A DNA stretch of 64,000 nucleotides, from the NCBI GenBank assembly GCA_051294905.1, contig CM119379.1, forward strand, positions 20,026,001-20,090,000. Reading direction: 5' to 3'. This DNA comes from Botryllus schlosseri. Its lineage: Eukaryota. Below the pieces are notes generated by a model. That model made no database searches. It was not told where the DNA came from and saw only the letters and a program-made list of their open reading frames with translations. The position numbers and the translations under genes were made by a program. Shown here piece after piece: positions 648 through 60,874 of this stretch; within the stretch, counting starts at the first letter, position 1; the number at the start of each line of letters is the position of its first letter.

Positions 648-1057
648 TCACACTTGCCTGAAGCACCACACTACTTTGGCATTAGCATTTGAAGTATTGC
701 ATTGGAACATTCCATCCGCATTAATTGTTTGAGCACACGCGTCGTCTCGGAAATTCATAATTCCCATTTGGCCTCCGTCAAGAGTAGCTCCACAAAAACA
801 ACCGTCCTGCATTCCGGTTTTTATCGCAGCTTTCAACTCGATTCCCCTCGCAATACGCCCGCCTGCAAGAGATGTCTTCTTCATAAAACACAGCCATCGA
901 ACATAAAACCCAAACGCCTCACCGTGCAAGTGACACGCAGCTGCCATTTCCTCATTATCAGCAAACACCTGATCGTCGGGCAGTTCAAAGAACTCGCAGC
1001 TATCCCCGGTTGCGGACATTGGTCTGTACCCAGCTTTTACGACAGCAAATACGTTTT
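648..1057 (-). CDS. Last two exons (923-1057, 648-862): Link-module-like C-terminal domain
   Basis: Removing the 60-nt GTGAG...TTGCAG intron (863-922) gives AAACHLHGGRIARGIELKAAIKTGMQDGCFCGATLDGG...DAC...VVWCFRQV*. This resembles the Link module pattern AC...GAxLATxxQLxAA..G.D.C..GWL.DG...C...YCF, though it lacks the conserved Trp. Confidence 0.6.
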
Positions 1058-7000: not shown

Positions 7001-10000
7001 GTGAAATTATCGGCCGTCCCAAAAGTCCCACAATGTCTACTGGCATGGTTTGGCACAAAGCTTGCGTCCCACTTGTGGTAAGAAGAATTGACATCAAATT
7101 CCACAGCATTCGCCCACAGGAAATCGCCTTCGTTTTGGTGATAGGGGGGGGGGGGGAGAGAAAGATAAATCACCGGTAGATTTTCTGGAAAATCTTCAAA
7201 TGCTTACCTTCGGTTCGTAAGTCGTCAAGACCAAGCCACCATCGTTCATGCTCAAACAGGAGATTTGCGTTGCGTAATTTTCGTTCTAATTTTGCCTGGA
7301 CAGTAGCATCTCGAATCTGAAAGATTAATAATGAAACAACAGGCATATCGGTTGAACTGTGAAGGCATGAACCGTGGAAGCTCCGGCCTGAGAGTTTGAA
7401 ATAGGGGATACTTCCCCACATAGGAACAAGCGAATGTCAAGCAAATTTACAATGGCCGTTATGATGGACTACAATGACGTGATAACTGATCCTATGTCAA
7501 ACTTAACTTGCTTATCCACCAAATGCATAATAAACAACTATAGACTAAAAAACTTTTATGATTATTTGGAACATAATCAATCAGTCATGATACATTGGAT
7601 GGAATAAATAAAATACCAATGTTGATAAGAACAAACTTACCGAGAATTGCATGAGCGAATTCATAGATCTACAATATTCCATGGCTTCTATGTAGGTCTT
7701 GTTACGAATATTGAAAAATATCTTCAATCCGTCATCGATTTCAACGAATCCTAGAGAAATGTTGGAAGTCAGAATTTCAAACTAGAAAACCACGCTGCTG
7801 AGTCGAGCTACCTGGCGGATAACATGCCTCTGCCTCAATTCCGTCAGTGCTGTCGGCGTCAGCTTGAGTTTTGATATCACGAAATTCGTTGATGACTATC
7901 CACAAGTTTCTGGACATGTAAGATTCCATCGGTCCAGTCGGGATCATACCCTCAACTATGTTACATCCAATCTGGGTATAAGAAGATATTCGCCAAACAG
8001 TTGATATGAACCCGACTGATCAAAGTAAGCTTACGTATACGTAGAGATCTTCGAGGCATGTTAAATTGTGGCGTGGTTTGTATTTGCAACTAAGCGGGAA
8101 AGCTACAAAAAGAGAAGGTATTAAATTTTAAGCATTTGACATACTAAGATGATTACATACTAAAATAATCAGCAAAGGGTCGATATCCCACAAATATTAC
8201 CAATCAAACTTACTGAAACCATAGCATTCCATTTGTACTGTCTTGTTGAGAGCCATCAATTCCAATATTTCCTTGTAATGCGAACTCACGAAAAAGTAAC
8301 TCCGCTCGACTGGTGAAAGCGACAACGGATAGCCGAGACCCATCGGTATGCATTCCGTTATGTTCACCCACATCAGATGCAGGCAGGAATTGGAATGGAT
8401 GGGCCAGTAGGGGCATCCTTCAATAAGTTCTATTGCAAAACGATGATACAAGTATTGAAAAATACAGACAAAAGCACATTATACTTACCTATGCCATAGC
8501 AATCAAGTTGATTCTTTGACGAGCCAGAGTCAGCCAAATCTCGGATGAGTTGGATATAATTAAGAACATCCCTGTTTCAATTTAAATCATGATTAACTGT
8601 CCTAGGTACGAGTAGTCCTATATACATTGCCCGGATATTGAACCTACGTAAAGTGAGTGAAATTCACAAAACATATCCAAGAACGCAAGCTAATATATAC
8701 AAATATATTCAGTTACACATTTTTGACATCAGTAATAACATCACACCTTTGGTTCATTGGATCATATGTTGCGTCTTTCACGGTTACATTCAATGTAGGG
8801 GGGAATTCTCTGCCATCTGGAGAGCATCTAACGACAGTCAGCCATATGTAGTCGATGCATGAGTCATTCATAGGCCCATAGAACTTGTCGCAATTATCGT
8901 AGTAATCTAAATTTTTTTAAATTTTTATGCAGTGTTAAACAAAGACATGAGATGAAATTAACTTGACAATATAGATAGAGTTGAAGATTATTCATGATTT
9001 AAGGAGACAACTTCAATCATATTTTGAATTTGGAGATGATGATTCCTCCCATAAGTTCAAAGTTGACAATTGGTCCATTACTAATAGCTTGCCGTAAGAG
9101 TCAAATCTTAAATCATACCTATACCGAAGCAATTCAACTGGTCCTTGACATATCCCATGTCGGCGCGCTTTCTTGATGCATTCATAATATCAATTATATC
9201 CCTGAAAATAGGATTAACATTGCAACAAATATAGATTATCGTGGGAAATGGACATGCTGAGCAGGGCTGTAACCAATTCACAAGGCTCCGCGTCTCACTT
9301 TTATAGTTTTGACCCGAGTCAAGTTTGAGTCCAAGTCAACGAGAAGAGGGTTGAGTCCGAGTCATGGTATTATGACTCGAGTCCGAGTCCAAGTCATTGC
9401 GTATTGACTGCTCAGTTTTCAGTTAAAGTCTGTTTTACAAGCTTATCTCGTCTTCTGGATCATACAGGCTCGGTCGCACTTCTCTCATTTAGCTTCGTGG
9501 TGTAGTTCGTTAGGCGTTAGGTGTTTTACAGTTTTGAAAAGTGAAGCAAAATTTTTTGGAAAAAGTAGGAGCTGCCAACCGGTTAAATTTATAATAATCG
9601 TCAGATTGTATTTTTATTTGATCAAGACACACACAATATACAATGCGATACACACTGACGAAAATTTCACAACAATATTTCTATACTATATTACTATCAC
9701 ACCACAAGCTATGTTAGTGATTAGCAGTAATCTGACCTAAAATATCGACTAGTGGCAAACATAAAATCAACACAAAAGTGATGAAATGCTTGTCTGTCGA
9801 GGTAACGAAAGATCTCACCAGAGATTTGTAGTGTTTAGCACAGTTAAATCTGGATCGCTCAAATTTTCTGGATGGGCATAACCTTCTTCCACACATTCGG
9901 AGTCAATGAATATTCCAGTGAAGCAGTCCAGGCTATTCGGGCCAAGAAACCGTTGACAATCGTCAGGGAATACTAAAAGTGCAGAGGTGGGTGAGGGAGT

Positions 10001-13000
10001 TATAAAGTTACAATGCATACGTGTATATTACCTCTTCCGTAGCACGCAACTTGAGCCGTTGCGTTCCAATTGTTGGCGGGGTACCAGTACGTTGAATTGA
10101 AGAACGCGCTGACTTCTCTGAATATATTTGCAAACACAATAACAGAGCCTGAGCTATATATTTTTTACGTAAAAATATCGGCACCAGTAAAGCATAGTAG
10201 GTAATTATCGGTAATTTCAATGACATTGTCACTAAACAGTGAGGAACGTCTTCAGTGCTATTGGATTGATTTATGAGGAACATAGAAGTTCGCACTTAAA
10301 GATTAATTGCAAATGAATGAAAATAATATGGGTCTATTTACTGCCACTAATAACAAGTCTGCAAAAATATGCTTTTCTCACAATTCTGAAATCCTGCGGG
10401 CTCTAATTACGAATGTGACCATATGTTGATAAATGATATGATCTAAGACTGCTAGATTACATAAATATAATTCGTTGAGCAAATTACAAGGACTAATACA
10501 CCCCACCTGTACAGGGTTGATTAGGTATTATCGAATGTCCTTAGACACGGCAAAACACAGCAATATGCTTTCCATTCAAGCTTGATCCAATTTTGGGTCT
10601 AACCAGAAATAAAAAGACTTCACAAATTTATGACATCCCAAACCTCAGATCAAGATCAGCAACTTTCCAATATTCGGCACTCGTAAGCTTAGGCGGGAAT
10701 TTGGCGCCTTCGCTGATACAGCCAACTGATTCCCAAATAGTGATCAAACACTCCACAGAGTGCGGTCCGTAATATGATGTGCAATTCGCAGGATACTCTA
10801 AAAGGCAACGATTGTGAGGTGTCAATAGTAGGGAATGGACAACAAAATCGTACTCATTCCAAAGCACAGCCACTGGTCAGCCACACTTGCATTGTCTGCT
10901 CGTTCAGCGGTAGCATTCATCAGTTCAGACACTTCCCTGAAAAATATAAGTATGAAAAACAGTTGAACACACTGCTACTGTATATGTATTATGTTTACCA
11001 TCTCAGTTTCATCTGACCAGAATAATAGAAACTAAAAATACACATATATACATAGAAAACTAGTGTGTAGCTGTACAAAAGTTAGTCCTGTTGGATAAAT
11101 TCACAGAGTTTCTGAAAACTACTATTACTCCTCACCAAAAGAAGTTGTATTAGTATGGCATTTTTTATATTCACAGCAGTAACAACTAGAAAGACACTTC
11201 AAGCAAATAACATATTGTGGTGAAGCATCTTCATTGTGTTGAATAGTTGTGAAACCATCATGAACAAACGAAACTGTTTCAGCAATATTCCTCTTTTTAG
11301 CCTCAGCTGATAACTGCATGCTGTTCAGAATTATAGCAACTTTTCATTCACTGCGCATGCCCCGCTCTTTACTTTGCTTAGGCCAAGGTGGGTGTCTAAT
11401 TTAAAGACAACTCCGAGTCTTTTCATTATATCGCTATCATGTGGTGTATTGATTTGATAAAAATTTGTTAACAAACAGAACTGAAAGATATGTAGGTTTC
11501 CTGATTCTGCAAGATGCTTTTAGATACTGTTACTTGCATATAAACATTCCCATTCATCGTTATAAATCTTGGTTTACCAATCTATAATTAGGGGAGGGCA
11601 AAATCGAGTACCTGAGTGATTCGATTCTGAATCACGTATTATGCTTCGAGTCGAGAATCACTCACTATGATGCCATAACAGAATTCAAATATCATCACAT
11701 ACGGTCTATCTACGGCGATACGGCCTATCAAGGTTTCAAGGCTTCCATAGTGGAAAATGATATCGAAACTATAATTCTTATTGATTATTTAACTTTCAGT
11801 GGCGAGGAGCGTATAATTTCAGTACTCTTTAACTACTTGACTCGAATAATTGAATTCCTATCTTAACATAATTTGAGTTCTTGCATAAATATTGTTCATT
11901 AGAGTTGATTGCATCCATTTCCAGCAGTGAAGCCATGTCAATCTGAGCCACTTCTATCATGGGCTGCTAGCATTGCTACCTGATGTTGCTAGCATTGTAA
12001 ACGTCCCATAAATCCGATGTGATGTTGTTTGGATCTCCATGGCCCACAGGCAGACAGGTAGACACGTTCCACAAACTTTCAAGGCACTCCAGCGGATGAG
12101 GACCATAATATTTCAAACATCCGTCAGGATATACTGAAGAAAAAGGAGCTCTTTTTGCAAAGATATGCACCGGTAAACACCAAACACATACCCAGTCCAT
12201 AGCAATCCAGCTGTTTGCTAGCATTGTTGCTATCCGCTTCCAAACTGATATTATCAAACGTTTCGTAAACATCTCTAAAATATTTACATTTCAAGTGTAC
12301 ACACAATTCGTTTCAGATTGAAGCGAAATAATGACAGCCTGACATGCAAACCTTAAATTTGTGACATCATAGTTGTCAAGCTCTGGCTCCTTCAACTTGT
12401 CAGGATGCTTCTCCCCTTCTTCCGTACAATTGGAAAGATCCCAAATAGTATGCAGACATTCAATAGGATGTGGACCGTAGTAATTCGTGCAGTTGTTGTA
12501 GTATACTACGCAGAGCGGTATTAGAGTCAATTTAAAGATTAAATCACAAACACTGGCATACCCATCCCAAAACACTTTTTCTGATCTGCAACGCTTGCAT
12601 TATCTGCTCTTGTTGCTGTATCGTTGAAGATTGTTTCAACGTCGCTGGAATATGGACTAATGAGATAAACTAGTAAAAAATACTGTATTCGTATATTCAT
12701 TTGTAATACTAATGGCAAAAATAAAAACCAACATCAACTACAATTATGTACATAAGATGACATTACAGATACAATTACTGAACTGGATATTACCGTGAGG
12801 TAATCATTTCACATCACATAGGTAGAGATAATTTGCCCCTATAGAATTGCAACACTTTGGCTTCCACTCAGCCAAATGATACACAATAGGCGTCACATAT
12901 TTTACCGGATATTTGTAGAGTTCAGAACAGTCAGTTCAGTGGAATTCAATTTTGACGGGTGTCCTGTCCCTTCTTTTAAACAAGTAGCCGAAGTCCAAAT

Positions 13001-16000
13001 TGTTTTCAAGCATTCTGGAGGATGCGGTCCATAGTACTTGGTACATCCATCAGGATACACTTAACATAGGATAAGTCAAAGGAATGATACGACACCATAA
13101 AATGAGTTTCACCCTACCCATTCCAAAGCACTGAAGCTGTTTGGTGGAGTTCCCACTATCTGCCGAGTCCCGTATCTCATCAAACGCTTTCAAAACTTGC
13201 CTAAACAAACAGGTGTCCTATCGAAAAAAAGCACATACACCACAATGCAAAACTCACCTGATGTTCATGTCATCATATTTGTCTAACTCAACAAGGGATA
13301 ATTTCCACGGATACTTCGTACCGTCAGGAATGCATCCAACTGATATCCACATTGTTTCCAAGCATTCAATGGGATGAGGCCCATAGTAATTGACACAGTG
13401 CTCAGGAAATACTGAAATATCATTCGAATACATGGACACAATGTAAAAAAGTGGGAAAGTACAATTGAAACTGTAGCCGACATGAGACGGATAGGTGTAT
13501 TAGTTCTAAATTGAAGGTTTATGCCATGAGAGAACATGCAAGTAGTTTTGCATGTACGTAAAGTAGCTCACATCGACTGAGATATTAGCAGAGTCAGTAT
13601 GCAATACAACAAATTTGCGATAACTATACCAGCGCAAATTTTCACATAATTTGTGACGCTAATTACTGGAAGTGTCCAATTAAGTGTCGGACTATCCATA
13701 CTCTGAGTTCTCAAACTAATTCGGGGACCGGGAAGAGTTTATCAATTCAACACAAGGTATACTACACATTATACTATGAAACGACCGACCGCTGATAATA
13801 ACATGTGCCTTGACACATTTGCGATATAACGACAGTCAAGAAAGCAAAAGTCCAAATATAGCAGCAAACCGATATGTAAGGCAACTTTAATTTATACCAT
13901 AGAAACCTAGTTTCATATGAAATTACCCATTCCAAAACAATCCAATTGATCCTCGACACTTCCGTTATTGGCTTGGGCAGCAGTGTTGTTATATAAATCG
14001 ATGAGTTCACTGAAATTATGTACAAGTTGGCACCCCATGATTACACATATAAAAGCAAAAATCTCCGCCATACCGAAGATTCAGCTCGTCCTGTTCGGTA
14101 TGCTGCGTGGCTGTAAGATTTTGAGGATAGTGATAGCCCTCAGGCAGACAGGAAGACGAATTCCACACGGTTTCCAAGCACTCCATTGGGTGTGGCCCAT
14201 AGTATTTTTCGCACCCATCGGGATATACTGATGAAAGTAACCCATTAGCACACTCTCTAATAACGTAATCGCAGAAAGGTTGGGTTACCAATGCCAAAGC
14301 ATTCCAATTGTTTTGTTGCATTGCCTGAATCTGCCAGTTCACGCGTTTCATTGTAGATAGACATCACTTGCCTGTTAATCCAAGATAGTATATTCTCACG
14401 TTCAAACAGGGTTCAATACTGAAATCCTGATGTTCAGGAGTAGACAGAATTCCCAAGAGTTCAAGAGTACAGATGAGTTATATTGTCCCTAGTCGAAAAC
14501 GGCACGATGTCTGGCATTCCAAGCACACCGAGCCACAAAGACTATGTTAACAGATGTCATGTTGAAAGTTGCATTTTGAATAATCATTCATTAGTGTTAA
14601 GTATTTCCTAGTAGACTTGCAATTGACAAGATTAGCATCAAGTCAAGTTGCAATATTCACCAATATTCAACAGATGGGCATTACTGAGTGAATTAGCTTT
14701 AATACAAAAATGATATTGTAATTGAATGCGATAAACTCACTGTGAACAAAATTATAATATTCCATAGACAAAAATCAGTTACTTCTAAAAACTAGGCATA
14801 AGCGACATACTAAAACTGCATGGGGAAATGAAACCGAAAATGCTACCCTAAAATTTGATTTGAATATAACAAATCTAGTGACCCACCTTAGGTCTCGCTT
14901 ATCAAACCGCTCATGCTCGTCCTCTGAAATGTTGTGAGGATACTTGGTACCCTCAGGCAGGCATTCCACATCAACCCAAATCGTTGCCAGACATTCCGGT
15001 GGATGAGGTCCATAATAGTTTATGCAATCCTCCGGATAAACTGACGAACATATATCTGCTTACAACCACATTAATAGGATAAAAGTAATAACCTACTTAA
15101 ACCAAAGCAATCAAGTTGACTTGCAACACTTCCGTTATCGGCTTGTTCTGCTGTATTGTTATATAGCTCGATCAAGTCTCTGTGAAATGAGTGTTATTGT
15201 GTTACAATATCTCATCAATGAACCTAGCCAGAAAAACGTGGATCAACATAAACATACATTCAACAGTAGATCTCAACAACGTTCCAAGTCCCTAAACTGT
15301 GTATTGAAAATGCTATTGTTAGAGTCTAGAATTCCCAGCGGAGAGCGTCTGTCTTAGTAGTCAACTTTATAGAGATGGGGCTCAATTATTTGCGGATAAA
15401 AAATGCCGTCCCAGATGATAATATTGATACATTTGATAATGTAATTAGTGCATAATATTTACATACTGCATTGATTGAGGAGACCAAGAATATTCAAACC
15501 TCGTGTATTTATTGCGTCTTATTCTAGATATCGACTATCACATCCCATCGTAATTTACTTCAAGTAACAAAAGCCAAGATTCCAGAGAATTGGGAAGACT
15601 CATTTCCTAAACCTACTTGAATCAACGTCTGAATAAACTTGGTATGTATGGAGTAATATTTGTGGATTCTAGAGGATCTCGTATGCACAGGACAGGTTAT
15701 GTAGCAAATCAGCTAAAGCCAATACTTTGGTTAGCTCCCAGGAACATAAAAATTGCTGCAATACAGTTATTTTTTGTAAAAATCCGGGTATAGTTTCTGT
15801 ATAGAGGGCTCAGAGCGATATTTCAAATTCTGAAAAGAGATTGAGGCTAGTTTGAAACTCTATGTATAGTTGCTATAGTCGCTACTGTACGAAATGCATA
15901 TATTACAAAACTGAAAAAAAATGTCTACCTTATGCTCATAGCGTCTTGAATAGCATGCTGGCTGGAATTCAACTTCTCGGGGAACATGTGTCCGAAGTCC

Positions 16001-25000: not shown

Positions 25001-28000
25001 GTATCAAGTTCCGCCAGTCTGGGAGCCGACAATTTTCTTGGATATTTATACCCTTCCCTTACGCAGGTGGCAATTGTCCACAGGGTGACGTAGCAATCCA
25101 CAGAATTTGGACCATAATATTTTGTACAATTCTCAGGATAAACTGTCATAAATAAGATTTAGATATTTGATGTACTAACACATAACACAATAAATCGCGA
25201 TAGCTGTATGAGATATGCCTCATAATAAGTATCGCATTCAAACCGATATTATGTGATTATACGAAGCGTCATAACGAGCCATAAAAAAGAATAAATATGA
25301 AATTCCTACCTAGTCCAAAACAACGTAATTGGCTTGTCGCATTTCCAGAATCGGCATCGGACTTGGTTGCGTTGAATTCACGTATTATTTCTCTAGAAGA
25401 CCGCTGTGTCAGCAGATCGGTTTTCAATGTGTCCATATATCTGGTTACCTTAGATTCATAGAGTTATGTCTTGCCACTTCAGCAGACGGGATCTTGGTGG
25501 GGTAAGCAACACCTTCGGATATACAATGAGCATTGTCCCATATAGATATGAGGCATTCAATGGAATGGGGGCCATAGTATTTAGTGCAGTTCATCGGATA
25601 TTCTAAGAATAAAAAGTTGGTAAAGTGCTGTGAAAAAAGAAAGCAATTTTATATTACCTATTCCAAAACAATAAGTTTGATTCACAAGGCTACCATTATC
25701 AGCCGATTGTGCGGTTGCGTCGAAAAAGCTGGAAATCTCTCTAAAAGACCAAAATATGTTAAAATGAATAGCATGAAGATATTTTATAAACAGATCTCGA
25801 TATGATTCAGGAGTGAATCGTATGAAGCAGTCGGAATTTACAACAGGTGGAAAGGCACATGACCCAGTACAATACCCTAACAAATACTAAGAATAGTAAT
25901 ATTTTGAAACGGGAATATTTTGAGATAAAACTACTGAGTACAAACAACACAATCATTACCTGAGATCCCATGAGTTCAGTTCGATTAGTCTTGCGGATGA
26001 TAACTTTTTGGGATATTTGTATCCTTGCCGTAAGCATGTGGCATTAAGCCACATCGTAACCAAACAATCAACCGAATGTGGGCCATAATATTTGGTGCAA
26101 TTTTCAGGATAAACTAACAATAAACAGATGCTCGTTTCATGAAGATCGCACACAAAATTAAATACTTCATTACCTAATCCGAAGCACTCCATTTGACTAG
26201 TGCTATCTCCATTGTCAGCATTGTCCCTTATTGTATTTGTTTCATTAATTACCTCTCTACAAAAATGGGATGTTACTGAATGTAGCATGAGGTAATATAA
26301 CTGTATCTAGCATACCTCAGATCCAGAGTATCGATACGAGCATGCTCGGTGGGAGACAGCTTCACAGGAAAGCGCGTTCCATCAGAAAGACATTCAACAC
26401 TTACCCAAATCGTTGTTAGGCACTCAATTGGGTGTGGGCCGTAGTAATTTGTACAGTTATCGGGATAAACTGCCCAATTTAAGAAGATCATCACAGGATA
26501 TGTTGAATGACGAGCAAAAAATATACCTACCCATCCCATAACACTTAATTTGATGAGTTACATTGCCGCTATCAGCAGCAATAGCAGAATCATTGAAGAG
26601 ACTGATGAGAGCCCTGCATAATAACAAATCGGTGTCACTAATATGATATCCAGTGTTTTTATATAAAGTAAACAACTGCATAAAGTCTCCAAGATAGTAT
26701 GGATCATTGAAATTTAAATAGTGCTCATTTTTATTGACGTTTGTGCCTCCTTGCAGCTGCGATGAAACTTATTGCAACCCTAGCTATATGGAGTTAAGCT
26801 ATAATAATATACCTACTCGACACACAAACAATTTTTAAATTGGATAGCATTTTGGAGGTACAGAATATGCAATTCAATAGCATATCCAAATTGAAATCAG
26901 CCCGAATATTTTCCGATGACACTAGTCAGCAACTAGTAGAGAATTGAACATTTGAAATTTTGAATAATCACAGTGAATAGAGCGCTGAGCCCAATGTATT
27001 ATTTAGACAGTACACAAACTCCAACCAAGACTATGTCTATAGAAGGAGTACTAAAATAATACTTTAGGCTCAGCGTTCTCTTAACCCCCATTATTCAAAA
27101 TTTCTTGTCGCTGCCACGCTATATTTTGTGATACAATTGTTGAGATATACAATGTTGTTCCCAATTCTCCACTAGTACCTGAAGATCACCAATGACGAGG
27201 GTCAGCCATGTTCGGGTGCATTTCAATATGAATATTCTATCCAAATTTTATATTAACCCGCCTTATGCCCATTCCAGTGAAATAATTGATGTCCGCAGGA
27301 GTCAATTTTGTTGGATGTCCAGTTCCTTCTGGAAGACACATCACTCTATTCCATAGTGTGGTGAGACATGCTTCTGAATAGGCACCGTAATATGAAGAAC
27401 AGTTGGAAGGATACTCTGCAACGGAAAAAAAAAGACGTAGAATTAAGGGATGAGTGAGCGTCAACAAGCCTCACTGATTCCAAAACACAGCAATTGGCTG
27501 GTGACGTTTCCCGAATCAGCCGATGACTTAGTCCCATTGAAGTCGTTGATAATTTCCCTATTAGGAGGTTTTTTCCGGATAACAAATGAAAAATCATGCA
27601 TCAACTTGAGAAATTGAAATGTACCTGAGATTCATAGAATCAAGTCTCGTCAATTCACTAGGTTGTAGCTTGGCCGGATATCCGTGTCCTTCAGATTTAC
27701 AATGAGAATTGTTCCAGATAGTTTCGAGACACTCCAAAGCATGGGGACCGTAGTACTTTGTACAGTGCGTTGGGAATTCTAATCATCAAAATATCACAGA
27801 ATTTAAAGAGAACGGACCACTAAGCAAAAGTTTACCGATTCCAAAGCAGTATGTTTGATTCACCAGGCTTCCATTATGAGCAGATTGTGCGGTCGCGTCA
27901 AAGAAGTCGGAAATCTCTCTAAGAGACCAAAATATGTTGAAATGAATAGCATGAAGATATTTCATAAACAGATCGCGATATAATTCAGGAGTGAATCGTA

Positions 28001-31000
28001 TGAAGCAGTCGGAATTTACAATAGGTGGAAAGGCACATGACCCAGTACAATACCCTAACAAATACGAAGAATAGTAATATTTTGAAACGGGAATATTTTG
28101 AGATAAAACTACCAAGTACAAACAACACAATCATTACCTGAGATCCCATGAGTCCAGTTCAATTAGTCTTGCAGATGATAGCTTTCTGGGATATTTGTAT
28201 CCTTGCCGTAGGCATGTGGCATTAAGCCACATCGTAATCAAACAATCAACCGAATGTGGGCCATAATATTTGGTGCAATTTTCAGGATAAACTAACAATA
28301 AACAGATGCTCGTTACATGAAGATCGCGCACAAAATTTAATACTTTATTACCTAATCCGAAGCACTCCATTTGACTAGTGCTATCTCCATTGTCAGCATT
28401 GTCCCTTATTGTATTTGTTTCATTAATTAACTCTCTACAAAAATGGGATGTTACTGAATGTAGCATGAGGTAATATAACTGTATCTAGCATACCTCAGAT
28501 CCAGAGTATCGATACGAGCATGCTCGGTGGGAGACAGCTTCAGAGGAAAGCGCGTTCCATCAGAAAGACATTCAACACTTACCCAAATCGTTGTTAGGCA
28601 CTCAATTGGGTGTGGGCCGTAGTAATTTGTACAGTTATCGGGATAAACTGCCCAATTTAAGAAGATCATCACAGGATATGTTGAATGACGAGCAAAAAAT
28701 ATACCTACCCATCCCATAACACTTAATTTGATGAGTTACATTGCCGCTATCAGCAGCAATAGCAGAATCATTGAAGAGACTGATGAGAGCCCTGCATAAT
28801 AACAAATCGGTGTCACTAATATGATATCCAGTGTTTTTTAATAAAGTAAACAACTGTATAAAATCTCTAAGCTCGTATTGATCATTGAAATTCAAATAGT
28901 GCTCATTTTTATTGACGTTTGTGCCTCCTTGCAGCTGTGATGAAACGTATTGCAACCCTAGCTCTATGGTGTTAAGCTACAATAACATATCTACTCAATA
29001 CACAAACAATTTTTGAATTGAATAGCATTTTGGAGGTACAGAACTTCAATATGCAATTCAATAGCATATCCAAATTGAAATAAGCTCGAATATTTTTCGA
29101 CGACACTAGTCAGCAACTACCGTAATTTTCCATGTATAATGCGCAAAATTATACCGATTTTTTGCCCTAAAATAGGGGGGTGCGTATTATACATGGGTAC
29201 AGCAAGCCTTGAAAAAAAATACTTCAATCAAAAACTTGAAATCACACCTTTCTTCATGCTTGTTTAAATCGCGCATCACCTCTAGCCATTGGGCCCCGTA
29301 ATTCGTATTATCAAGTGTAACGCGCTGCCAAATAGAGAAGCGTGTTGCCAATTAACGAAAGCGTGTTTCTAATTAACGAGAGTCGTCTGCAAAGCACGCG
29401 ATCGCTTGCTGAGTTGGTTTGCCGTTTGTACGCGAGCGAAAATAGGTCGCTGATTGCTACAAGCGTGCGCGGCAATCCTTGCTGATTCATCGCGTCAACG
29501 ACAGGCCTTAACAATCGCATACACGAGAGGCCATGCGCGCAAGATATAATCGCTCGCGTAATCAGTCGCATCTCCAACTGGACTGGTACGCCCGACATAA
29601 CCGTTGGCCTGAGCAATCGCATCTGTAATTGTAATAGGCCACGTGCTCAAGATGTCGTGTGTCGCTAGCCTGAACTATCGCGCCCCGACCTCACAGGCTT
29701 TGACTTCTATCTACTCTCGTTTAGAGACAATGCCGGTAATTGTATTATGATTAGCGATCATTATGTCATGATTGTTTGACAGTGACATAGCAAAACAGAA
29801 CAACATCGAATACTAAACCGCAACTATTCATGTACTCATGTACTGCGAATGCAGAATGCGTACTATACATGGGTAGAGGCTTTTTCCCAGAATATACACG
29901 TCATTTTAAGGGTGCGTATTATAAATGGAGGCGCACTATATTCGGAAAATTACGGTAGTAGAGAATTGAATATTTGAAATTTTGAATAATCACAGTGAAT
30001 AGAGCGCTGAGACCAATGTATTCTTTAGACAGTACACGAACTCAACCAAGACTATGTCTTTAGAAGGAGTACTATAATAATACTTTAAGCTTGGCGTCCT
30101 CTTCACCCCTATTATTCAAAATTTCTTGTCGCTGCCACGTTATATTTTGTGATACAATTGTTGAGACATACAATGTTGTTTCCAATTCTCCACTAGTTTC
30201 TGAAGATCACCACTGATGAAGGTCAGCCAAAAATGTTCGGGTTCATTTCAATATGAATATTCTATCCAAATTTTATATTAACCCGCCTTATGCCCATTCC
30301 AGTGAAGGAATTGATGTCCGCAGGAGTCAATTTTGTTGGATGTCCAGTTCCTTCTGGAAGACACATCACTCTATTCCATAGTGTGGTGAGACATGCTTCT
30401 GAATAGGCACCGTAATATGAAGAACAGTTGGAAGGATACTCTGCAACAGAAGAAAAAAAGACGTAGAATTGAAGGATTAGTGAGCGTCAACAAGCCTCAC
30501 TGATTCCAAAACACAGCAATTGGCTGGTGACGTTTCCCGAATCAGCCGATGACTTAGTCCCATTGAAGTCATGGATAATTTCCCTATCAGGAAGTTTTTT
30601 TTGGATAACAAATGAAAAATCATGCATCAACTTGAGAAATTGAAATGTACCTGAGATTCATAGAATCAAGTCTCGTCAATTCACTAGGTTGTACCTTGGC
30701 CGGATATCCGTGTCCTTCAGATTTACAATGAGAATTGTTCCAGATAGTTTCGAGACACTCCAAAGCATGGGGACCGTAGTACTTAGTACAGTGCGTTGGG
30801 AATTCTAACCATCAAAATATCTCAGAATTTAAAGAGAACGGACCACTAAACAAAAGTTTACCGATTCCAAAGCAATATGTTTGATTCACCAGGCTTCCAT
30901 TATGAGCAGATTGTGCGGTCGCGTCAAAGAAGTCGGAAATCTCTCTAAGAGACCAAAATATGTTGAAATGAATAGCATGAAGATATTTCATAAACAGATC

Positions 31001-34000
31001 TCGATATAATTCAGGAGTGAATCGTATGAGGCAGTCGGAATTTACAATAGGTGGAAAGGCACATGACCCAGTACAATACCCTAACAAATACGAAGAATAG
31101 TAATATTTTGAAACGGGAATATTTTGAGATAAAACTACTAAGTACAAACAACACAATCATTACCTGAGATCCCATGAGTCCAGTTCAATTAGTCTCGCAG
31201 ATGATAGCTTTCTGGGATATTTGTATCCTTGCCATAAGCATGTGGCATTAAGCCACATTGTAACCAAACAATCAACCGAATGTGGGCCATAATATTTGGT
31301 GCAATTTTCAGGATAAACTAACAATGAACAGATGATCGTTACATGAAGATCGCACACAAAATTAAATACTTTATTACCTAATCCGAAGCACTCCATTTGA
31401 CTAGTGCTATCTCCATTGTCAGCATTGACCCTTATTGTATTTGTCTCATTAATTAACTCCCTACAAAAATGGGATGTTACTGAATGTATCAAGAGGATGT
31501 ATAACTGTATCTATCATACCTAAGATCCAGAGTATCGATACGAGCATGCTCGGTGGGGTTCAGCTTCGGAGGAAAGCGCGTTCCATCAGAAAGACATTCA
31601 ACACTTACCCAAATCGTTTTTAGGCACTCAATCGAGTGTGGGCCGTAGTAATTCGTACAGTTATCAGGATAAACTGCCCAATTTAACAAGATTATCACAG
31701 GATATGTTAAATGACTAGCAAAAAATACCTACCCATTCCATAGCACTTCATTTGATGAGTTAAATCGCCGCTATCAGCGGCAATAGCAGAATCATTGAAG
31801 AGACTGATGAGAGACCTGCATAATAACAAGTCAGTGTCACCAATATTATATTCAGTATTTTATATAAAGTGAACAGCTGTACAAAATCTCAAAGCTTGTA
31901 TGGATCATTGAAGTTAAAAGAGTGCTCATTATCATTGACTTGGTGGATCCATGCAGCTGTAATCAAACTTATTGCAACCTCGACTCTATGGTGTTAAGCT
32001 ATAATACTGGTCAACAAAATGAAAATCAAATATTGGGCAGAACATCTATGAGCCTTTTCGGGGTTTGTAAGGTGGCTGATTACGGAATATCATATAAGTT
32101 TTGCCAGATTTGCTCAACCTTAGGAAATATGTATATATCCAAAAAGACTAAATTACTGTAGTTACCACCTAAATATTTCACTTGGTAGGAATAGTATCTT
32201 CATTACCTTTATACTCCACATAAATAGAATTGACTATATAAATAACCCCCATGTCGTCCTCCATTATTCAATCAACATGAACATGGCCTGATTCGAGATC
32301 TTTGTTTGTCAAAAAAGCAGTTTGTCAAGACTAAAAACTGTACTTTTCATGACGGAAATATATTTTTCCTATACCAGATGTTGATTCTACCAAGACGAAA
32401 GAGGAGTACAATGTTATCAAATTTGTCCTTGAATTGCTTAACTACAATACTCATATGCGTCCGATCTCTCATGACAAGTAAATAGACAAATTTCTGCCGA
32501 GCCAACAAAGTGGGGATACCTAGTATCCATATCGAACAGGAATGGTGAGGCTGTTATCTTTGATGGAACTTCATATATTCAAATATGAATGAAAGAATAT
32601 AATATCATACTGTTAAAGAGCTCAGTGCATGGAATTTATATCAAGCGTTGTGAAAGATCACAAACCACCCAACTAAAAACAGTTGGCCTGAAAATTGGTA
32701 TCTGCATATGGAAAACTTGAAGCAAACATGAGCATTCAACTCCATCTCCTGCTCAGTCATCTTGATATACTTTCTGATCATCTTGATGATTAGAGTGAAG
32801 AGTGGGGCGAAAGGTTCCACCCAGACATCAAAACAACAAAAGAAAGATATCAGGGACGATGAGATGAACTTATTATCGCAGACTATTGCAGGACCCTTTC
32901 GAATGACTACACTAAATTGATAACTGGCAAAAATCATACAAAAAACAACTTTATTGAGATAAATGATTATTAATATAAATTGAAACTTATTATTTGGAAT
33001 TTACAATAGGTAGGTAACATAAAACTGATTGAACTAATGTAATTTTTCCTGATAATTCAGGTAAATACGTACATATATAGAATAGACGTTTATTTAGGAA
33101 CATGATATCCATGAAAGCATTCAACTCGGAAAAATCGAATGCCCCCAAATATATTAAATTTCTGAACTTTATAATACAACTGAGATCTTTTTTTCATCAG
33201 TCCATACAGCGAAAATATGAGATTTTAGTGAAAAATAGCCCCATATGTCGTCTCCAAAACAAGAGCCAATGTAAAAAAACTAAGGCCATATTCAGAATCA
33301 GTGCCCTTCAGAATACCCCAAACCACTCATAGTTTGTCTGTCTAAAAATATGTTCTGACCAGTGTGATATATCTATTCAATACAATTTTTAATACAATAT
33401 TTAAATTGAAGAGCATTTTGAAGGTACAGAACTTCAATATACAATTCAATAGTATATATGAATAGAAATGAATCCTAATATTTTCGGATGAAACTAGTCA
33501 GCTACTAGTAAAGAATTGAAAAATTGAAATTTCGAATAATCACAGCGAAGAGAGCGCAAAGCTCAATGCAGTCTTTTTAGATGGTACACGAACTCCAACC
33601 AAGCCTGCGCTAACAGGAGTTCATGTACCTTCTAAAAATAGTACTTTGAGCTCAGCGTTCTCTTCACCCCGATTATTCAAAATTTCATGTCGGTGCGACG
33701 TTATACTTTGTGATACAAATGTTGAGATATACAATGTTGTTTACAATTCTCTACTAGTTGCTGACGATTATCCCTGACAAGTGTCAGCCGAAGATGTCCG
33801 GTTTCATTTCAATATGAATATTCTATTCAAATTTTATATTAACCCGCCTTATGCCCATTCCAGTGAAGGAATTGATGTCCGCAGGAGTCAATTTTGTTGG
33901 ATGTCCAGTTCCTTCTGGAAGACACATCACTCTATTCCATAGTGTGGTGAGACATGCTTCTGAATAGGCACCGTAATATGAAGAACAGTTGGAAGGATAC

Positions 34001-35207: not shown

Positions 35208-37318
35208 CTGAAGAAATAAAGTGAAATTGGTGCAAACCAAGTCTTACAAAATGCTGAAATTAAATGTGTACATAAAACAGAAAATACAAACGAAACACTC
35301 ATCAGATAAAGTTCGAGATAGAAGCCGGCAACACAATGGTATGGAAAACGAGAATAAATGGTTGCAATATTTCAACATTTCTTCATCAGAATCAAAGCTG
35401 GAAATCACTCTTCAGACGTGAGAACTAAATCTCAGAGGATCAATATTTCCAGGACTTCCTCCAAGTCACATGAATTAGATATCCGTTCATCTTCTGTTTT
35501 CGAAGGGGCACATCAGAAGGCAGCAGACATGTGCACCAGGTCATCAATTCCTAATTCGCAAGCTTCATGCGGTTGCTTGTATGGCTCTTGGCGTTAAGTT
35601 GCTGAAGTCTTTCTAAGTCGTAACGCTGCATAACCCTATGTATTCACTCTATTGACACAGCGCGCTCTGTCTTGAAAAATACACTAATTACAGAAACAAC
35701 ATCTTGGGTTCTTGGACTCTGACTGAGTGATCCCAAACTACACTTTCACTGGTTTCTAAAGAGGCTATGCAACTAGTACCATAGAAATAAATCATAGAAT
35801 TCGAAAATTGATTGTGCAATTCTGTAATAGAAAACAATTATCATTCATGAGTAAATGTTGAGTAATAAAGTAAAGTAAATAGGAATCATGTTTCATGGGA
35901 GTCCTGAGACTAAGCAACCTCTCCAAACCATTCTAGGTTTGCTTTGTACTGTATACTCTTGAATACTCAATACTAATCAAATATAGTACTCATATATAGT
36001 GTTTTGATAAACAAATTCACATATATCTAGAGTAGCGTTTCTTACACTTTTCCGAACAAGTACCACCAATTTGTATTTTACTGCGCTGCGTACCACGATG
36101 CTCCTGAATGACCAATACCGATATTTATAAGTTATTGACATTGTGATTAAATTCGATAGATGCAACTGTTTCTTTTGCAAAAGCATGTCAATCCAGAGTG
36201 TGACATTCTTACAGTAGAGAATGTAGAGGGCTTGTTCTGGCAAACGAGGATGTCTTTTCTGCATGATTCAGATGCCGTTCAAGGTGCCTTTTTAAGAAGC
36301 TTGAACTCATGGCCTCGTTAAAACAGGTTTTAATACAAACCACAAACATCATTCTTCGTATTTGGTTGCGATGAATCCATACTTTTTGTGTTCTGGATTA
36401 TAGTTTCATTCCGACATGCTGCATACTGTACTAATGAATTAGTCAGTTGGTCATAGTAGCGTATTTAGTCAATCTCATTAGTTGCTTAGTTTTCTATGTT
36501 TTGACGCCACTGCTGACATGATTCTTATATTGTGTATTCACAGTGGTTTTAGCTACAGCAAATTGAAGAATAAGTACAATTAACAAAATCGCCGTACTTT
36601 TCGTGTACCATTGCAAAGGTCTCGTGTACCACAATTTGAATTCCACTGACCAGTGTTCCTTGACCTTTCTAGCCCTTGTACCTCTTCTGTTTCCAATATA
36701 ATTTCTCGCACACACTGTCTATGATCGGAACAGCATTTAGTCAGACCACAACCAAATTCTGGTCTTGAGCCCACATTGGGTTCTGAACATAACTTCTGAA
36801 ACAGACCATTTTCGCGCTACCATTTATGCAGGAGATTCAAAAATTAATACATTCTTTCGGTATTGAATTAAGGTCGGGATTACTCAATTCAAGACCTTAA
36901 TACTTCTCCATTTATTTCCATTTTTGTCATACCCAAGCTAATGAAGAATTTTTTTTAAATGATTGAATAAATTCTACCAAATACATTGGTACTTATATAT
37001 ATGACCATTCATTTTTTATCCTCTCACAGCGCATGTGATCAGATTTTCCGTTGACTGGTAGAGGTGATGGAGGTGATGACTTCAAAAATTTGGGGTACAA
37101 CTTTGTCCATCTTAGGCCATGTTCTATTTTTCATGACACACAGTTATTTGTGAGTATGCATTGTTAGTAATTACTTTGTCGAAGCACGTTTATTTCGGGA
37201 AGGATTGTTGCTACTTAATGATATTGATATCACTCACACGTACTTGGCCAAACTTACAATAAAATTCATTCGCATTTGCATCACAGGGTTAGTGCCAGGC
37301 GATATCACTAGTAATTAG

Positions 37319-38971
37319 TAGGGCAAGTTTTTGCCACTTTTGCCACTTTTTTTTACAGCTTCCAGCAGATTCCTAATTACTCAAAAGTTGTGCAGTATGG
37401 CGTTCTAAGCTGTGTGGAGGAATCTTATATTGCAACTATTGGCAACTTTCCTCCATTTTTTTCATGCAACTTATTGCAATTTTTCAATTCTTCATGTTAC
37501 TCTTTTTCGTTTTTTCATGCAACTTTTTTCGATTTTTCATGCAACTAATATTTGGAACCATAGGCGCCGGACGCTAATTTTTCTTAGGTATGCGGGTTTG
37601 ATGACGTCACAAAGGTATGGCGTGATAATGTGACATAATTGATAATTAGGGTTAATATAGCATCGATTCATTGGGGTAAAATGCATGCGTAAATGCCGAT
37701 TATACAATCTCCACGTGTCGACGAACTTACTCGTATGGTAAGCTTGTCAACGAGTCCGGAAGTGCTGTCAAACTGTCAATTACCGAGTTCATTAAATCTC
37801 GCGAACAATTAAATACGCCGCTTATAAACACGTACTACGTAACCTCGTCGACGATTTTCGCAAGTATAAATGTCCGAATTGTTATGGAATCTGTTCTATC
37901 ATGGCACCGATTTCAGGTGGTTCAAACCTTTCTCGTCGTACACAACTCAAGCCTTGACACACATCTTCTGAAGGTTATGTTCAAGTACTAGCGGAATTCA
38001 ATTACGCATGCACGCCTGCACCATCGCACATGTCTGTGGACATTCGATGTCTCGCTAATAAGCATACACTTAAAGGTATTGTCTCCAAGCCATTGAGAGA
38101 TAGAGGCCAAAGCATGCTAGGCCTTAGACGCGATAGTTGGCCAGCGATAATATCTTTTGTACCCGGCGTATTGCAGATGCGATTGTGTAGGCTTGCGACG
38201 ATATCGTGCACAGCACACCAAGTCAATGCAGATGCGATTGTGCAGGTCAACGTGGTATAGTGCGCACCGGGCCTATTGCAGACGCGATTCTTCAAGCCAG
38301 AGGAACTAGGCTTGCTGAAGACGAGATAAATCAGGCCAGTGAAGATTGCCAAGCGCACGGCAATGAATGACCTAATTTTGCGACCATCTCAACAGGAGAT
38401 CGCGTCGCGCGATATTATGCACAGACGAATCTTGCTAATTGGCAACACGCTTCTCGCTAATTGGTCGTGCTCACCGGGTTACCTCGCTCACATAAGCGGC
38501 AGTAGATAATCTCGTTAACATATTTACATCGCGATTTGTTCGAAATAGCACAATTGACGACCATGCCGATACATGGCTAACGGAATTCTAGGTATGCCGC
38601 ATACCTACAAAAATGTCTAGGTATGCGCTGCATACCTTGCATACCCAGGTTCGGCGCCCATGTTTGGAACAATAGGCTATGTAAATACATCGCTTGATTA
38701 TTTCACTGACGTTTAATTATATTTTCACCGGGTCAAATTTTTCAGGTGATTGATTTTTTTGGAGTCGCCAAAGCTGAGTTTTGCTACGGTGCCTTGCATA
38801 CGGGTCGGTTTGAGTACCGTATCTTATACCCTACTAATTTCAAGGAACTTGTCCATAAATGGAAATTTTGAGTGTAACTTTTGTGCAAAATGAATGCGAC
38901 TTTTTAATGCAACTTTTGTGAAAAATAAATGCAACTTTTCATGGATTTGACTGCAACAAAAACTTGCCCTA
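37319..38971. mobile_element. Outer hAT-like MITE (host of a nested element)
   Basis: TIRs TAGGGCAAGTTTTTG / CAAAAACTTGCCCTA. TSD GTAATTAG / GTAATCAG (1 mismatch). ATGCAACTT subterminal repeats on both sides. Confidence 0.85.
37559..38662. mobile_element. Inner non-autonomous DNA transposon nested in 37319-38971
   Basis: TIRs CATAGGCGCCG / CGGCGCCCATG (1 mismatch). Perfect 8-bp TSD TTTGGAAC (37551-37558, 38663-38670). Subterminal GGTATGC/GCATACC repeats. Confidence 0.85.
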
Positions 38972-39815
38972 GTAATCAGACTATACCAATAGGCAGGTTC
39001 TGCGCAATATATAGCTGGAAGGCAGAAGATCAATGTACTGGAGAAATAAAATCGTGCATGCGACAATACTTCATTGCTGCAGATTGAGATTTACCTCTCA
39101 CAATCTGTAATAGTTGGCGCTGTCAAAATCTAAGATTGCCAACATGATAATGAATTTGTAAATTTTACAAATACTCAGCTATTGACAGGTATTATTTCAT
39201 GCTAACACCTTGTCTTCCTGTCTAACAATCTCTGCAATCCATCCAATTTCCTATGATAGGATGAAGTAATTATATGTTTCTATTCAGGTGCCTCATATAT
39301 TTTTGTGAAACTTCATGACTATCTTCTTTGGTAAACTAATGATTCTACTGCCTCAAACAGTTACAAAAATCGAGAGTGACTAATGTACTAGGAATTACAT
39401 ATTAACAAGGTAGTTATAAGGTGCACACTCCACAGCCTACAATCTGCACGGAACCCATACAAAATTATTTCTTTTAACTGAAATAGATGCACGAAGAAAA
39501 TAATTGGAGTAATGACCATTTAAATAATCACCTAAAACATTATAGAGATTTAGTCTACCAATTACTGTCCAGCGATATAAAATAATATACCTATATTTGT
39601 AATGCCCCTAAAGAATGACATCTACAAAATTCGATTACAAACTGTCATAATTCACATTACGTCACACATTCACATCATGCACTCATGGTATGCATATGCA
39701 CAGATCGTGCATATGTATATCGTGATTCGATGTGTAGGCCTATCCCGCAAAAACTTCAAAGACAGAAATATAAGTCCTATTCCTAATTCATTCATTTGTC
39801 ATTGAATAGTCTTAC

Positions 39816-54440: not shown

Positions 54441-55883
54441 CTAAATGAATTAGTCAATATTGTTACAGTCGAATAGAATTACAGATTGGAAAACATTAAC
54501 AAGACACATGTAAATCAGATAACATGACGAGGTAAATTTTCAAAATGTGTTGGATTTTACAAATAATAACGTAATTATAACAGTAAACAGTAAAAATATC
54601 AAAACATTCATTAAAATTGAGGAGCCGTTGATTGTGCATTTAGGTCACTCTTCAAAAAGAGCATCACGTTGTAGACGATCCAACAGTCAATAATCTTTGA
54701 ACTTGTTGAATGTCTTTTGAATCAAAATCTTTGGTCTTTAGTCTTCCAGTTGAGAAGTAATTGCCTCCATACTTCAGCATCCGGATCCCTATGCTCATGC
54801 TCAGTTTGAGGAGCAGAATATATCTAACCGTGCAAAGCCTGACTAGGTACAGCCTTTATTTTCACATATCTAACTGATGACTAAGCAGCTCGAGATCTTC
54901 AATTTGCCCCTATATCTGCTGCCACCATGGCTGAGAAAAAGGCAGCACCTGACTGATTCGATTGTGAGTCCAATATGAAGCAAAATCGAGACTTATAGCA
55001 GAGATATCCCTGACTTTTAGTAGGTCTTTCTATACATTACGAATACACAGACACTATTCCAAAAGAAACTTTGTATTTGTTCACTATAACTACGTAACTA
55101 CGCATTGTTACAACGTCACGAATCCATCATTACTTGCAAGAAATGAAATTTTCAGGAATACACGTAGCCTTTCCAACACGCTTTGGTTTCTATGATATAT
55201 ACTTCATTCCTCCAATGGGGAGAAGAAAGAATCGAAACAAGAATTCTTGTATATAAAATAATTCCTATCCAAGAGCACAAAGATTCGCATTAACATTTTT
55301 CTGCACTCATGTTGCATTTATAAATGTACAATGCTGTAAAATATAAGCCAGTGGTTCTAAATCTGTCTTTCCAAGTATCCAAGTGAAAATTTCTGCATCT
55401 TCAATAGGATATCGATGGGTTCATGATATCACTATTGAATCTTAATCGCCGGAGTCTCGGTATATAATACATACTCTCTACTGATTGATTCCTCTACTTT
55501 TTCTAAATGAGTCCCAGCTCTGCCAAGAATTCATTGGGTTTTTTACTCGATATTAGATTTAACTGGTAGTTATTTGCTTAACTATATATGCTATGAAGCT
55601 CGCACATAGTAAAAGGCCGACATGGGCATTGCACGATCCACCGGGCCAAATGATGCTATGAACCTATATGATATACATGAAATAAACAAGAGTTTCAATG
55701 CAACTCTAAGTATTGTAACTTGAAGAAATGAAAATTTAATCCAGAATTTCATAGAAACTTTTACCGAGGCACATGTTAAATATATACCAATATACTAATC
55801 AACTCTATTCAACGTCGAACGAGGATTTTTTTTTAGATACAAGACCAAAAATGACCAATTTATAAAACATAAAAATAGCTCAC

Positions 55884-58800: not shown

Positions 58801-60874
58801 AGGATATTCTTCAACAAAAAACTCAAAATCAAACATTGCAACAAATTACAGAACACATATACACACCCATTCCAAAGCACTTCATTTGATGAGACACATC
58901 TCCATTATCGGCAGAGACTGCAGAGTTATTGAATAGAGTAATAACAGGTCTATAAAACAATATCACAGACTTCAAAGTACAATGTTATGTAAATATTTCC
59001 GTAATTAGTAAGTTGGTGTCCGAATATTGTCCGAGTATTGTGTACCGGTTAGGGTCGCGAACAAGGATTCAGGTACTTGAATCGGCATCGAGTATTTATT
59101 CCTATGATTCGAGTTGATTTTTTAGTACTGAAATGTTAGACTTATTGCCATACGGAATTAATTTATCAACTAGAACTGTTGTGTCAATACTACATTCTAC
59201 TGTGAAACAACGTGGACCTCGATTGGTCATATCACAGTATACCAAACATGTTGTACAAAGCTACACACATCATCGGAAATGACATTTCTGTTAAGTCGTG
59301 ATAAACCCACAGTGGTGTTACAAAGTCAAATTTAATAGGAATGGTCGAAAAATATCAAGTTAGTTTTCATAAGATGTAGAACGAGCAGTATATTCTCTGT
59401 GTTTGCATAAAATGTACATATTTGAGATTTCTACATCGTTCATGTGAAATTATGGCACTATGTAAAAGAGAAGCCACATTATGCTTTTCATTATTATTTA
59501 TTTACCGTAATCCTAGTCCGGTGAAAGAATCGATTGCACTTTTCGCCAACTTGGACGGATATTCAGTTCCATCAGCTACACACCCAACACTATCCCATAG
59601 TGTAAGAAGGCAAGTCTCAGAATATGCTCCATAGTAAGTATCACAGCCTCCCGGATACTCTATTCGAGAAATTGTATATAATAGGGATAGTCTTCTACTA
59701 GAACTGTTCCTCACCAAGCCCAAAGCAGCTCATCTGGCTTGCTGCAACGCCAGCATCTGCCGAGGTCTTCGTCCCATTAAATTCAGAAATGATTTGTCTG
59801 AGGTAAACATTTTAGTTTTCATGAAAAAGTACCCTGTCAAGTTGAAAAATACCTGATGTCCATTAGTTCAAGTCTTGAGCGTTCAGCAGTTGAAATCATT
59901 GCAGGATAGGATTTTCCATCAGTAGTGCAATGAGCATAATCCCAGAGTGTTTTAAGGCATTCCAAAGAATGTGGACCATAATATTTTACGCATTTTGAAG
60001 GATATTCTGAAATCAAAACTCACTACAGGACAGCGATAAGCTAGTTTAAATATTTTATACATTACCCAATCCATAGCAGTAAGTTTGATTTACAAGACTT
60101 CCACTATCAGCAGACAGTGCGGTCCCATTGAAATAACCTGATATCTGTCTAAATAAGAAACTATAAATCATTACCAAATTCAAGATCCAAGCACACGACT
60201 GAAAACCAAAACCTGAGGTTCCACGAATCCAGTTCTTTCAATCTTGCAGTAGAGAGTTTTTCAGGATATTTATATCCTTGTAGAACACAAGTTGCAGATA
60301 ACCACATTGTTACCAAGCATTCAACTGGATGGGGCCCATAGTAATTTGTACATTTATCAGGATACACTTTAAAAGAAGGATATTTAATAAACAAACTTCA
60401 TCACTGATTGCTCTAAGACTTACCCAGACCAAAACAGTCAATCTGACTTTTTTTATTACCTAAATCGGACGCACTCCTTGTGGTGCCAGTTTCATTCATT
60501 ACTTGTCTGGTAGAAATATACAAGAAAAGTAAAATGCATATGACAGACATTTACCAATCAGGGTAGCAATTACACACCTCAAATTTAGTTTATCGATGCG
60601 TGTATGATCCGCAGCAGAAAGCTTGGTAGGATGGCGTCTACCATTAAGCAAACATTTTGCGGAGGCCCATATTGTCTCAAGGCACTCTGTCGAATGCGGG
60701 CCATAATACTTTACACATAGGTCAGGAAACTCTGTGGAAAATTTCCATTAAAACAAATATCAATCGAAATAACTTGAGTACTGACACTAACCGAGCCCAT
60801 AGCATTGCAGTTGGTGAGATACATGTCCATTATTGGCTTCAGAAGCTGAATTGTTGAATTGAACACTCAATGTC
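55884..60874 (-). CDS. Block III: 12 repeat units (three E-T-H-G tetramers) plus a leading B exon. Upstream exon not found.
   Basis: Example exons: T 58295-58448 (154 nt) and B 58158-58240 (83 nt), separated by a 54-nt intron. Leading B exon RTLSVQFNNSASEANNG ends at 60874. Confidence 0.85.

Follow-up and report, generated by a model that had tools for sequence, protein, structure and literature searches.

Giant extracellular proteins such as hyalin (HYR modules), SCO-spondin and hemicentin (TSR modules), the mucins (CysD and VWD modules) and the larvacean oikosins consist of tens of small cysteine-stabilised modules, which are encoded exon by exon, have multiplied by tandem duplication and form fibres or matrices. 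The lecticans (aggrecan, versican) and the mannose-receptor family are large extracellular mosaics with a mixture of EGF, C-type lectin, Link, Sushi and CysR domains and a long central spacer. Lecticans are recognised by an N-terminal Ig domain with two Link modules, a central glycosaminoglycan (GAG) region and a C-terminal series of EGF, C-type lectin-like domain (CTLD) and Sushi. Mannose receptors possess an N-terminal CysR domain, a fibronectin type II (FNII) domain, 8-10 CTLDs, a transmembrane segment and a short tail. Gel-forming mucins and VWF-like proteins have the series VWD-C8-TIL, regions rich in proline, threonine and serine (PTS) and a C-terminal cystine knot. The subject of this report is an array of 79 copies of a 79-residue, four-cysteine module in the genome of the ascidian Botryllus schlosseri. 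The array lies in a stretch of 64,000 nucleotides (GenBank assembly GCA_051294905.1, contig CM119379.1, positions 20,026,001 to 20,090,000 of the forward strand), called the window below; positions are those of the window.

The array very probably belongs to a giant gene that is real and expressed and whose repeated domain represents a new family. The overall reading, that the window holds the main body of one giant gene with an array of a new module, is considered likely. The product of the gene is a glycoprotein with at least 6,271 residues, in which 79 helical four-cysteine domains precede a lectin-rich tail. Proteins of this kind are familiar: giant extracellular mosaics that combine a tandem array of cysteine domains with lectin modules. 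The repeating unit is an undescribed family with a predicted fold that remained unmatched, and, to judge by the tools used, its link with a protein of giant-virus type is also new.

The design principle of the array is common to the modular giants named first (a comparison from general knowledge), but the window unit is helical and matches none of their families in Pfam. Like the lecticans and mannose receptors, the window gene is a large mosaic in which lectin modules are borne on a long, extended spacer. EGF and CTLD are present; no Ig domain was found, the Link match is sub-threshold and C-terminal, and the N-terminus lies outside the window. The spacer of lecticans is GAG-bearing and unstructured, whereas that of the window consists of folded helical domains, and the domain order differs. 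Neither an FNII match nor a transmembrane segment was found in the window, and CysR occurs only in the Styela clava counterpart described below, after the CTLDs. None of the mucin and VWF features is among the Pfam matches of the window tail or of the last 4,465 residues of this counterpart (the N-terminus being outside the window), and neither VWD nor PTS regions were detected in these residues or anywhere in the window.

Organization of the module array

Occurrences of the motif C-x2-[YFH][YFH]-G were counted in all six frames. The three minus-strand frames contain 33, 24 and 20 (77 in all), the plus-strand frames 0, 0 and 1. The motif is present far beyond chance and is strand-specific, and the gene is therefore located on the minus strand. 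An earlier note on this stretch, made from the letters alone, had given coordinates that hold; the gene is on the minus strand, a point on which the note is corrected. Its limits and copy number of the array were matched exactly by motif search and a rescan with a hidden Markov model (HMM). Two B exons and one divergent unit escaped the simple motif search; the HMM rescan yielded the final 79 A and 80 B exons (Table 1).

Each module is encoded by one A exon and one B exon, with splice sites tested at every copy. The A exon has 154 nt and extends from 14 nt 5' of the codon of the first cysteine (Cys1) to 140 nt past Cys1. The B exon has 83 nt and extends from 70 nt 5' of the Cys4 codon to 13 nt past Cys4. 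Together they comprise 237 nt, exactly 79 codons; two exons of the array depart from the fixed size, by +3 nt and +6 nt. Concatenation of all 159 exons produces an uninterrupted frame of 18,815 nt (6,271 codons, 0 stops), which agrees with the former description of stop-free exons and of about 6,200 residues from the repeats. The introns are in phases 1 and 2. As neither 154 nor 83 is a multiple of three, skipping of a lone A or B exon breaks the frame. All introns of the array are GT-AG except four, which are GC-AG. The median intron length is 60 nt; 18 introns exceed 500 nt. No recognisable coding open reading frame (ORF) was found in the long introns, including the longest one (ORF check).

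The units are arranged as a four-unit superrepeat (types A to D), and long introns mostly follow the A exon of a D-type unit. The mean pairwise identity between units is 48%, and most of the array is therefore unique sequence. The most recent superrepeats are nearly identical: units 39-42 and 43-46 share 97% of their positions in exons and 95% in introns, which indicates that the array is still expanding.

Table 1. Positions of the array, of the C-terminal domains and of the gene for a giant-virus-like relative
Feature	Position	Strand	Remarks
Module array	8489..60874	-	79 A exons + 80 B exons = 159; 79 tandem modules and a leading orphan B exon
First exon in window	60792..60874	-	B exon without A partner
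Longest intron	35208..39815	-	4,608 nt; after the A exon of unit 34; phase kept across
Recent superrepeats	25658..31673	-	Units 39-48, four-unit superrepeats of ~3 kb each
Divergent unit, HMM-recovered	9819..10117	-	B exon 10117-10032, A exon 9972-9819; brings the A count to 79
Last array exon	8489..8571	-	
Divergent module copy 1	8214..8421	-	A and B parts in one fused exon
Divergent module copy 2	7813..8106	-	Between array and first CTLD
C-type lectin exons	2640..7421	-	About four CTLD C-terminal halves
EGF-like domain, teneurin/tenascin type	6531..6671	-	PF23106, E 1.3e-05
Divergent module copy 3	3392..3690	-	Among CTLDs
Last coding block in window, Link-like	651..1124	-	Stop codon at ~651; colinear with Styela P0155 residues 4705-4817
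P0149 gene (separate contig)	L001:1401-3509		Intronless; 5-kb Logan contig, GC 23%

Sequence and predicted structure of the module

Each of the first 78 units, which were examined, contains exactly four cysteines, at positions 6, 17, 27 and 76 of the 79-residue period. The signature consists of Y-P-x2-C, YYGPH, C-L-x-T-x-W, G-x3-P-x-K-L, A-D-x-G and Q-x2-C-F-G. The Trp is invariant, and the other invariant or near-invariant columns outside the cysteines include many aromatic residues. The signature that had been proposed earlier, with its four cysteines, was recovered, except that its FGMG ending is in part artefactual: an intron splits the codon of the last Gly, and in the mature sequence units join as C-F-G-x / x-Y-P. 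The four invariant cysteines presumably form two disulfides. Of the 78 units, 65 have an N-x-T sequon at position 59, and the array as a whole contains 190 sequons. Ser and Thr account for 16% of the array, in which no PTS tract was found.

A single unit modelled with AlphaFold2 from 84 aligned units reached a predicted local distance difference test score (pLDDT) of 97.3 and a predicted template modelling score (pTM) of 0.85. Helices were placed at residues 15-24, 40-47, 51-66 and 70-77, and the module is predicted to be a compact four-helix domain. Three consecutive units gave a pLDDT of 97.1 and likewise a pTM of 0.85. This pTM means that the model is confident on the mutual arrangement of the units, which favours a stiff rod over beads on a string; consecutive modules would thus pack in a fixed geometry, and the rod suggested in the earlier note gains support from the model.

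The module fits neither a Pfam family nor any solved structure, in agreement with the earlier failure to name a family. In Pfam, one window unit matched 0 families at E ≤ 1, and when 84 ascidian units were searched singly no family was matched by more than one of them (best E 0.026). PDB sequences were searched with a profile of the A exon and one of the full unit, and no match was found (best E 0.44). Foldseek found no match in PDB with one unit (best E 3.7) or with the three-unit model (best E 3.8), and with VIA-align against 48,161 chains the best Z was 4.2, which is under the usual noise level. Fold searches of the Swiss-Prot part of AlphaFold DB and of BFVD gave no match. In the ESM Atlas, the feature search with the read-through unit and the viral module region (see below) returned only sub-threshold, unrelated clusters, and the shape search reached template modelling (TM) scores of at most 0.58, to AAA-lid-like helices. 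Among the AlphaFold DB clusters, the only real structural neighbours were eight metagenome proteins of the A0A6C0 series, including A0A6C0JBU9 and A0A6C0K3U4, with TM scores of 0.61-0.78 by query (0.69-0.78 for A0A6C0JBU9, A0A6C0K3U4 and others compared with P0149 below), probabilities of 0.92-1.00 and identities of 14-22%. Most of these are uncharacterized; the others are labelled Spondin-like TSP1, DUF7495 or major-capsid-protein N-terminal domain. A ninth, weaker match (rank 12, TM 0.52) is labelled Link domain.

Ends of the gene and C-terminal tail

The array opens with an orphan B exon, and the 5' part of the gene is therefore placed upstream of the window. No A-like exon, other exon-like sequence or signal-peptide exon was found in 60875-64000. 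At the other end the array is followed by the lectin domains, which had been expected at one end of the protein and are C-terminal. The three divergent copies of the module that had been reported among the lectin exons are present. The fusion of A and B parts in the exon of copy 1 gives the domain order as A then B.

Single exon fragments of the window matched Lectin_C (PF00059) with E values of 8e-05 to 7e-04, and one fragment passed the cut-off. The CTLD at ~4700-4530 on the minus strand keeps both EPN and WND (AEPNN...WNDYHC by direct reading), as does its counterpart in Phallusia mammillata. These motifs, which are of the Ca-dependent mannose type, are absent from the other CTLDs of the window tail. 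The tail is also colinear with that of a Styela protein in which Lectin_C is strong. On the basis of the Lectin_C match and the EPN/WND motifs, the C-terminal head can be assigned, by sequence, to the C-type lectins.

Either the window gene ends at the stop codon of the Link-like block, or a donor before this stop leads to exons beyond the start of the window. The Styela model continues for ~3,000 residues past the point that matches the stop (CysR, 10 Sushi, F5/8C).

Selection and expression

The ratio of nonsynonymous to synonymous substitutions (dN/dS; Nei-Gojobori) between paralogous units was 0.27, 0.20, 0.17, 0.10, 0.18 and 0.27 in bins of dS from <0.05 to 2.5. Copies of the superrepeat are 86-97% identical in exons versus 70-95% in their short introns. 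The array is under purifying selection. With a pLDDT of 97 for the single unit, these values bear out the earlier claim of a folded disulfide domain under selection.

Transcripts were sought in region 14001-19990 (minus strand), which contains no repeated 31-mers, by comparison with four public runs. One run (X1, 2015) gave transcript contigs in which exons are joined without introns. All 15 listed joints fall on predicted introns: eight are exact, five show an equivalent cut one base off, and two have two changed letters at the exon edge. The region has 24 predicted introns, and those with transcript support include introns of 515 nt and 280 nt. Wherever transcript contigs exist, the blocks of the array are spliced together as predicted, as had been supposed. 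The earlier note had named a lack of transcripts and a dN/dS near 1 as signs of decaying DNA; transcripts exist, and dN/dS stays between 0.10 and 0.27. Together with the open frame, these two results led to the rejection of a pseudogene.

Homologues in ascidians

A profile of 51 A-exon peptides, covering the A exon only, was searched against 1.84 billion representative proteins. It matched 505 proteins at E ≤ 1e-3, of which 110 reached E ≤ 1e-10. All named matches are models annotated as 'uncharacterized protein' from the ascidians Styela clava, Ciona intestinalis and Phallusia mammillata. Loci of S. clava hold 25, 13, 10 and 8 units, C. intestinalis has five units and in addition one member of 1,141 residues, and P. 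mammillata has a CTLD with three modules. The invariant columns of the module are common to the window and these homologues. Judged by sequence, the window module is a member of an unnamed ascidian family of 79-residue, four-cysteine modules (Styela LOC120345301 and relatives). Sequences of its relatives are already public, as uncharacterized gene models only, and a literature search with the locus names and the terms endostyle, mucus-net, oikosin, lectican and Link found no description of the module.

The closest comparison is provided by S. clava XP_077971250.1 (isoform X2 of LOC120345301, P0155 in Table 1), with 7,864 residues. A local HMM search identified 45 units, each of exactly 79 residues, from residue 21 on; the model also starts inside a B exon. 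The array is followed by an EGF domain, three CTLDs (Lectin_C, 1.2e-32), a Link-like domain (sub-threshold, E 6e-04), CysR, ten Sushi and F5/8C. Residues 3418-4817 are colinear with window positions 8913-657 at 35-81% identity per exon, and identity over the array is ~50%. The two genes have in common the module, its 79-residue period, the positions of the cysteines and the order EGF, CTLD, Link-like of the tail. They differ in the number of units (at least 79 in the window, 45 in Styela), in the ABCD four-unit superrepeat, which is found in the window only and was not seen in Styela, and in the CysR, ten Sushi and F5/8C domains, which are present in the Styela model and not in the window. The window gene is an ortholog-like counterpart of the Styela gene in another ascidian.

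Further Styela models (P0001-P0004, P0151 and P0154) come from the consecutive loci LOC120346536, -538, -544 and -548, with 8-25 units each and some with Sushi domains. At least two of these loci are located on one chromosome of 23.8 Mb. The neighbouring loci may be pieces of one or two giant genes that were split by annotation.

A giant-virus-like relative

Two tandem modules were detected in P0149, a protein of 702 residues, at ~236-399 (two hmmsearch stretches, E 1.4e-9). The protein consists of an N-terminal membrane anchor, a cysteine-rich stretch, the two modules and a PA14 domain. Over the full length of the module, the four cysteines, GPH, CL, W, G..P, AD and C-Y-G are in register with the ascidian modules, and hhalign gave a probability of 96.5% (E 7.7e-10). 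Neighbours on the contig are a deoxynucleoside/thymidylate kinase, a DUF7197 protein and a rhodanese. Because of the composition and gene content of the contig, P0149 looks like the gene of a giant virus of the mimivirus kind. P0149 differs from the window gene in having two modules instead of 79, no introns, a 4-residue insertion before Cys4, and the membrane anchor and PA14. A homologue search with the module region returned only P0149 itself, and no relatives were found in scans of viral and metagenome contigs.

The module could be a new extracellular fold that is shared only by tunicates and giant viruses (Imitervirales-like). This would imply horizontal transfer between nucleocytoplasmic large DNA viruses and the ascidian lineage, in either direction, with a subsequent ~80-fold amplification in ascidians into a stiff rod of glycoprotein, ~0.2 micrometre long, which might bind a cellulose or glycan matrix. 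This chain of events is regarded as doubtful.

Proposed function and alternative explanations

The product would be secreted, given that the recognisable domains are all of extracellular types and that cysteines and sequons are conserved. The array would form a rigid, heavily N-glycosylated rod, which at ~3 nm per module would have a length of ~0.2 micrometre (a rough estimate). Such a rod could serve as spacer or scaffold for the C-terminal multi-lectin head. The head, with its EPN-type CTLD, would bind glycans, and the molecule might then cross-link or agglutinate glycans in an extracellular matrix or secretion, for example tunic or mucus. This specific role of a cross-linker with stalk and lectin head is put forward as a tentative possibility.

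Several observations weigh against the overall interpretation. The window yielded no signal peptide or start codon, and its array begins with a B exon that has no partner. The single CTLD exon fragments lie near or below the Pfam gathering threshold. Three bulk RNA-seq runs, of which 6-13% each was read, gave 0 reads in 14001-19990; expression must therefore be restricted or low, and not ubiquitous. No transcript support was found across introns longer than 515 nt, including the 4.6-kb intron. The copy number at units 39-48, within the near-identical superrepeats, depends on the assembly. The rod length is an estimate, and the disulfide pairing is presumed.

Some of these points fit other explanations. 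The lack of transcript evidence over the longer introns is consistent with the 52-kb array being two or more adjacent paralogous genes, split at long gaps such as 35208-39815, or a set of cassettes joined in subsets, and the Styela annotation does divide similar arrays among neighbouring loci (LOC120346536, -538, -544, -548). Phase and frame are nevertheless continuous over all long introns, the array contains no internal start, signal-peptide or terminal exon, a single-exon skip would break the frame, and XP_077971250 runs from 45 units directly into its lectin tail, so that a division into several genes is improbable, though conceivable at the longest introns. The three runs without reads, and superrepeats of 3 kb in units 39-48 that are similar enough to be miscounted by assemblers, might suggest decaying or non-functional repeat DNA, or a copy number that is an artefact of assembly. 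The frame without stops over the whole array, a dN/dS well under 1, the spliced transcripts, the conservation of the family across ascidian orders and the mean unit identity of only 48% largely refute this explanation, which is hardly credible.

A different function is conceivable for the same single gene: the module itself could be the binding unit for glycan, cellulose or chitin, repeated 79 times for avidity, with the aromatic residues of YP, YYGPH and W22 as the binding face. Ascidians make a cellulose tunic, many of the invariant or near-invariant residues other than cysteine are aromatic, the module of P0149 adjoins PA14, a carbohydrate-binding domain, and neighbours in AlphaFold DB are labelled Link or TSP1. 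The predicted fold is, however, unlike any known carbohydrate-binding module or lectin, and the aromatic residues could equally make core or inter-domain contacts that would explain the rigid three-unit model. A binding module of this kind is a serious rival, though rather unlikely.

The module defines a domain family that is missing from present domain and structure libraries, and the confidence of its predicted fold is very high. With it, hundreds of ascidian orphan sequences, and some from giant viruses, would acquire a name. The 159 exons of two fixed sizes are a clean case of tandem duplication building a giant matrix protein, and are among the longest regular exon-by-exon arrays. As a candidate structural lectin, the product could belong to an ascidian secretion such as the tunic, a mucus net, an adhesive or a humoral agglutinin. 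The virus link, if true, would make the module one of the rare extracellular modules that animals share with giant viruses.

Upstream repeat and splice-site variants

The non-coding sequence 5' of the first window exon includes a tandem repeat of 60 bp at 62689-63055, with 6.1 copies and 89% matches. The four GC-AG introns have their donors (minus strand) at 34913, 33848, 30287 and 27262, and three of these lie in recently duplicated units. Three GC-AG introns, all in D-type units of the recent superrepeats, have the identical donor AAG/gcgggt, which indicates that the rare splice site was copied together with the unit.

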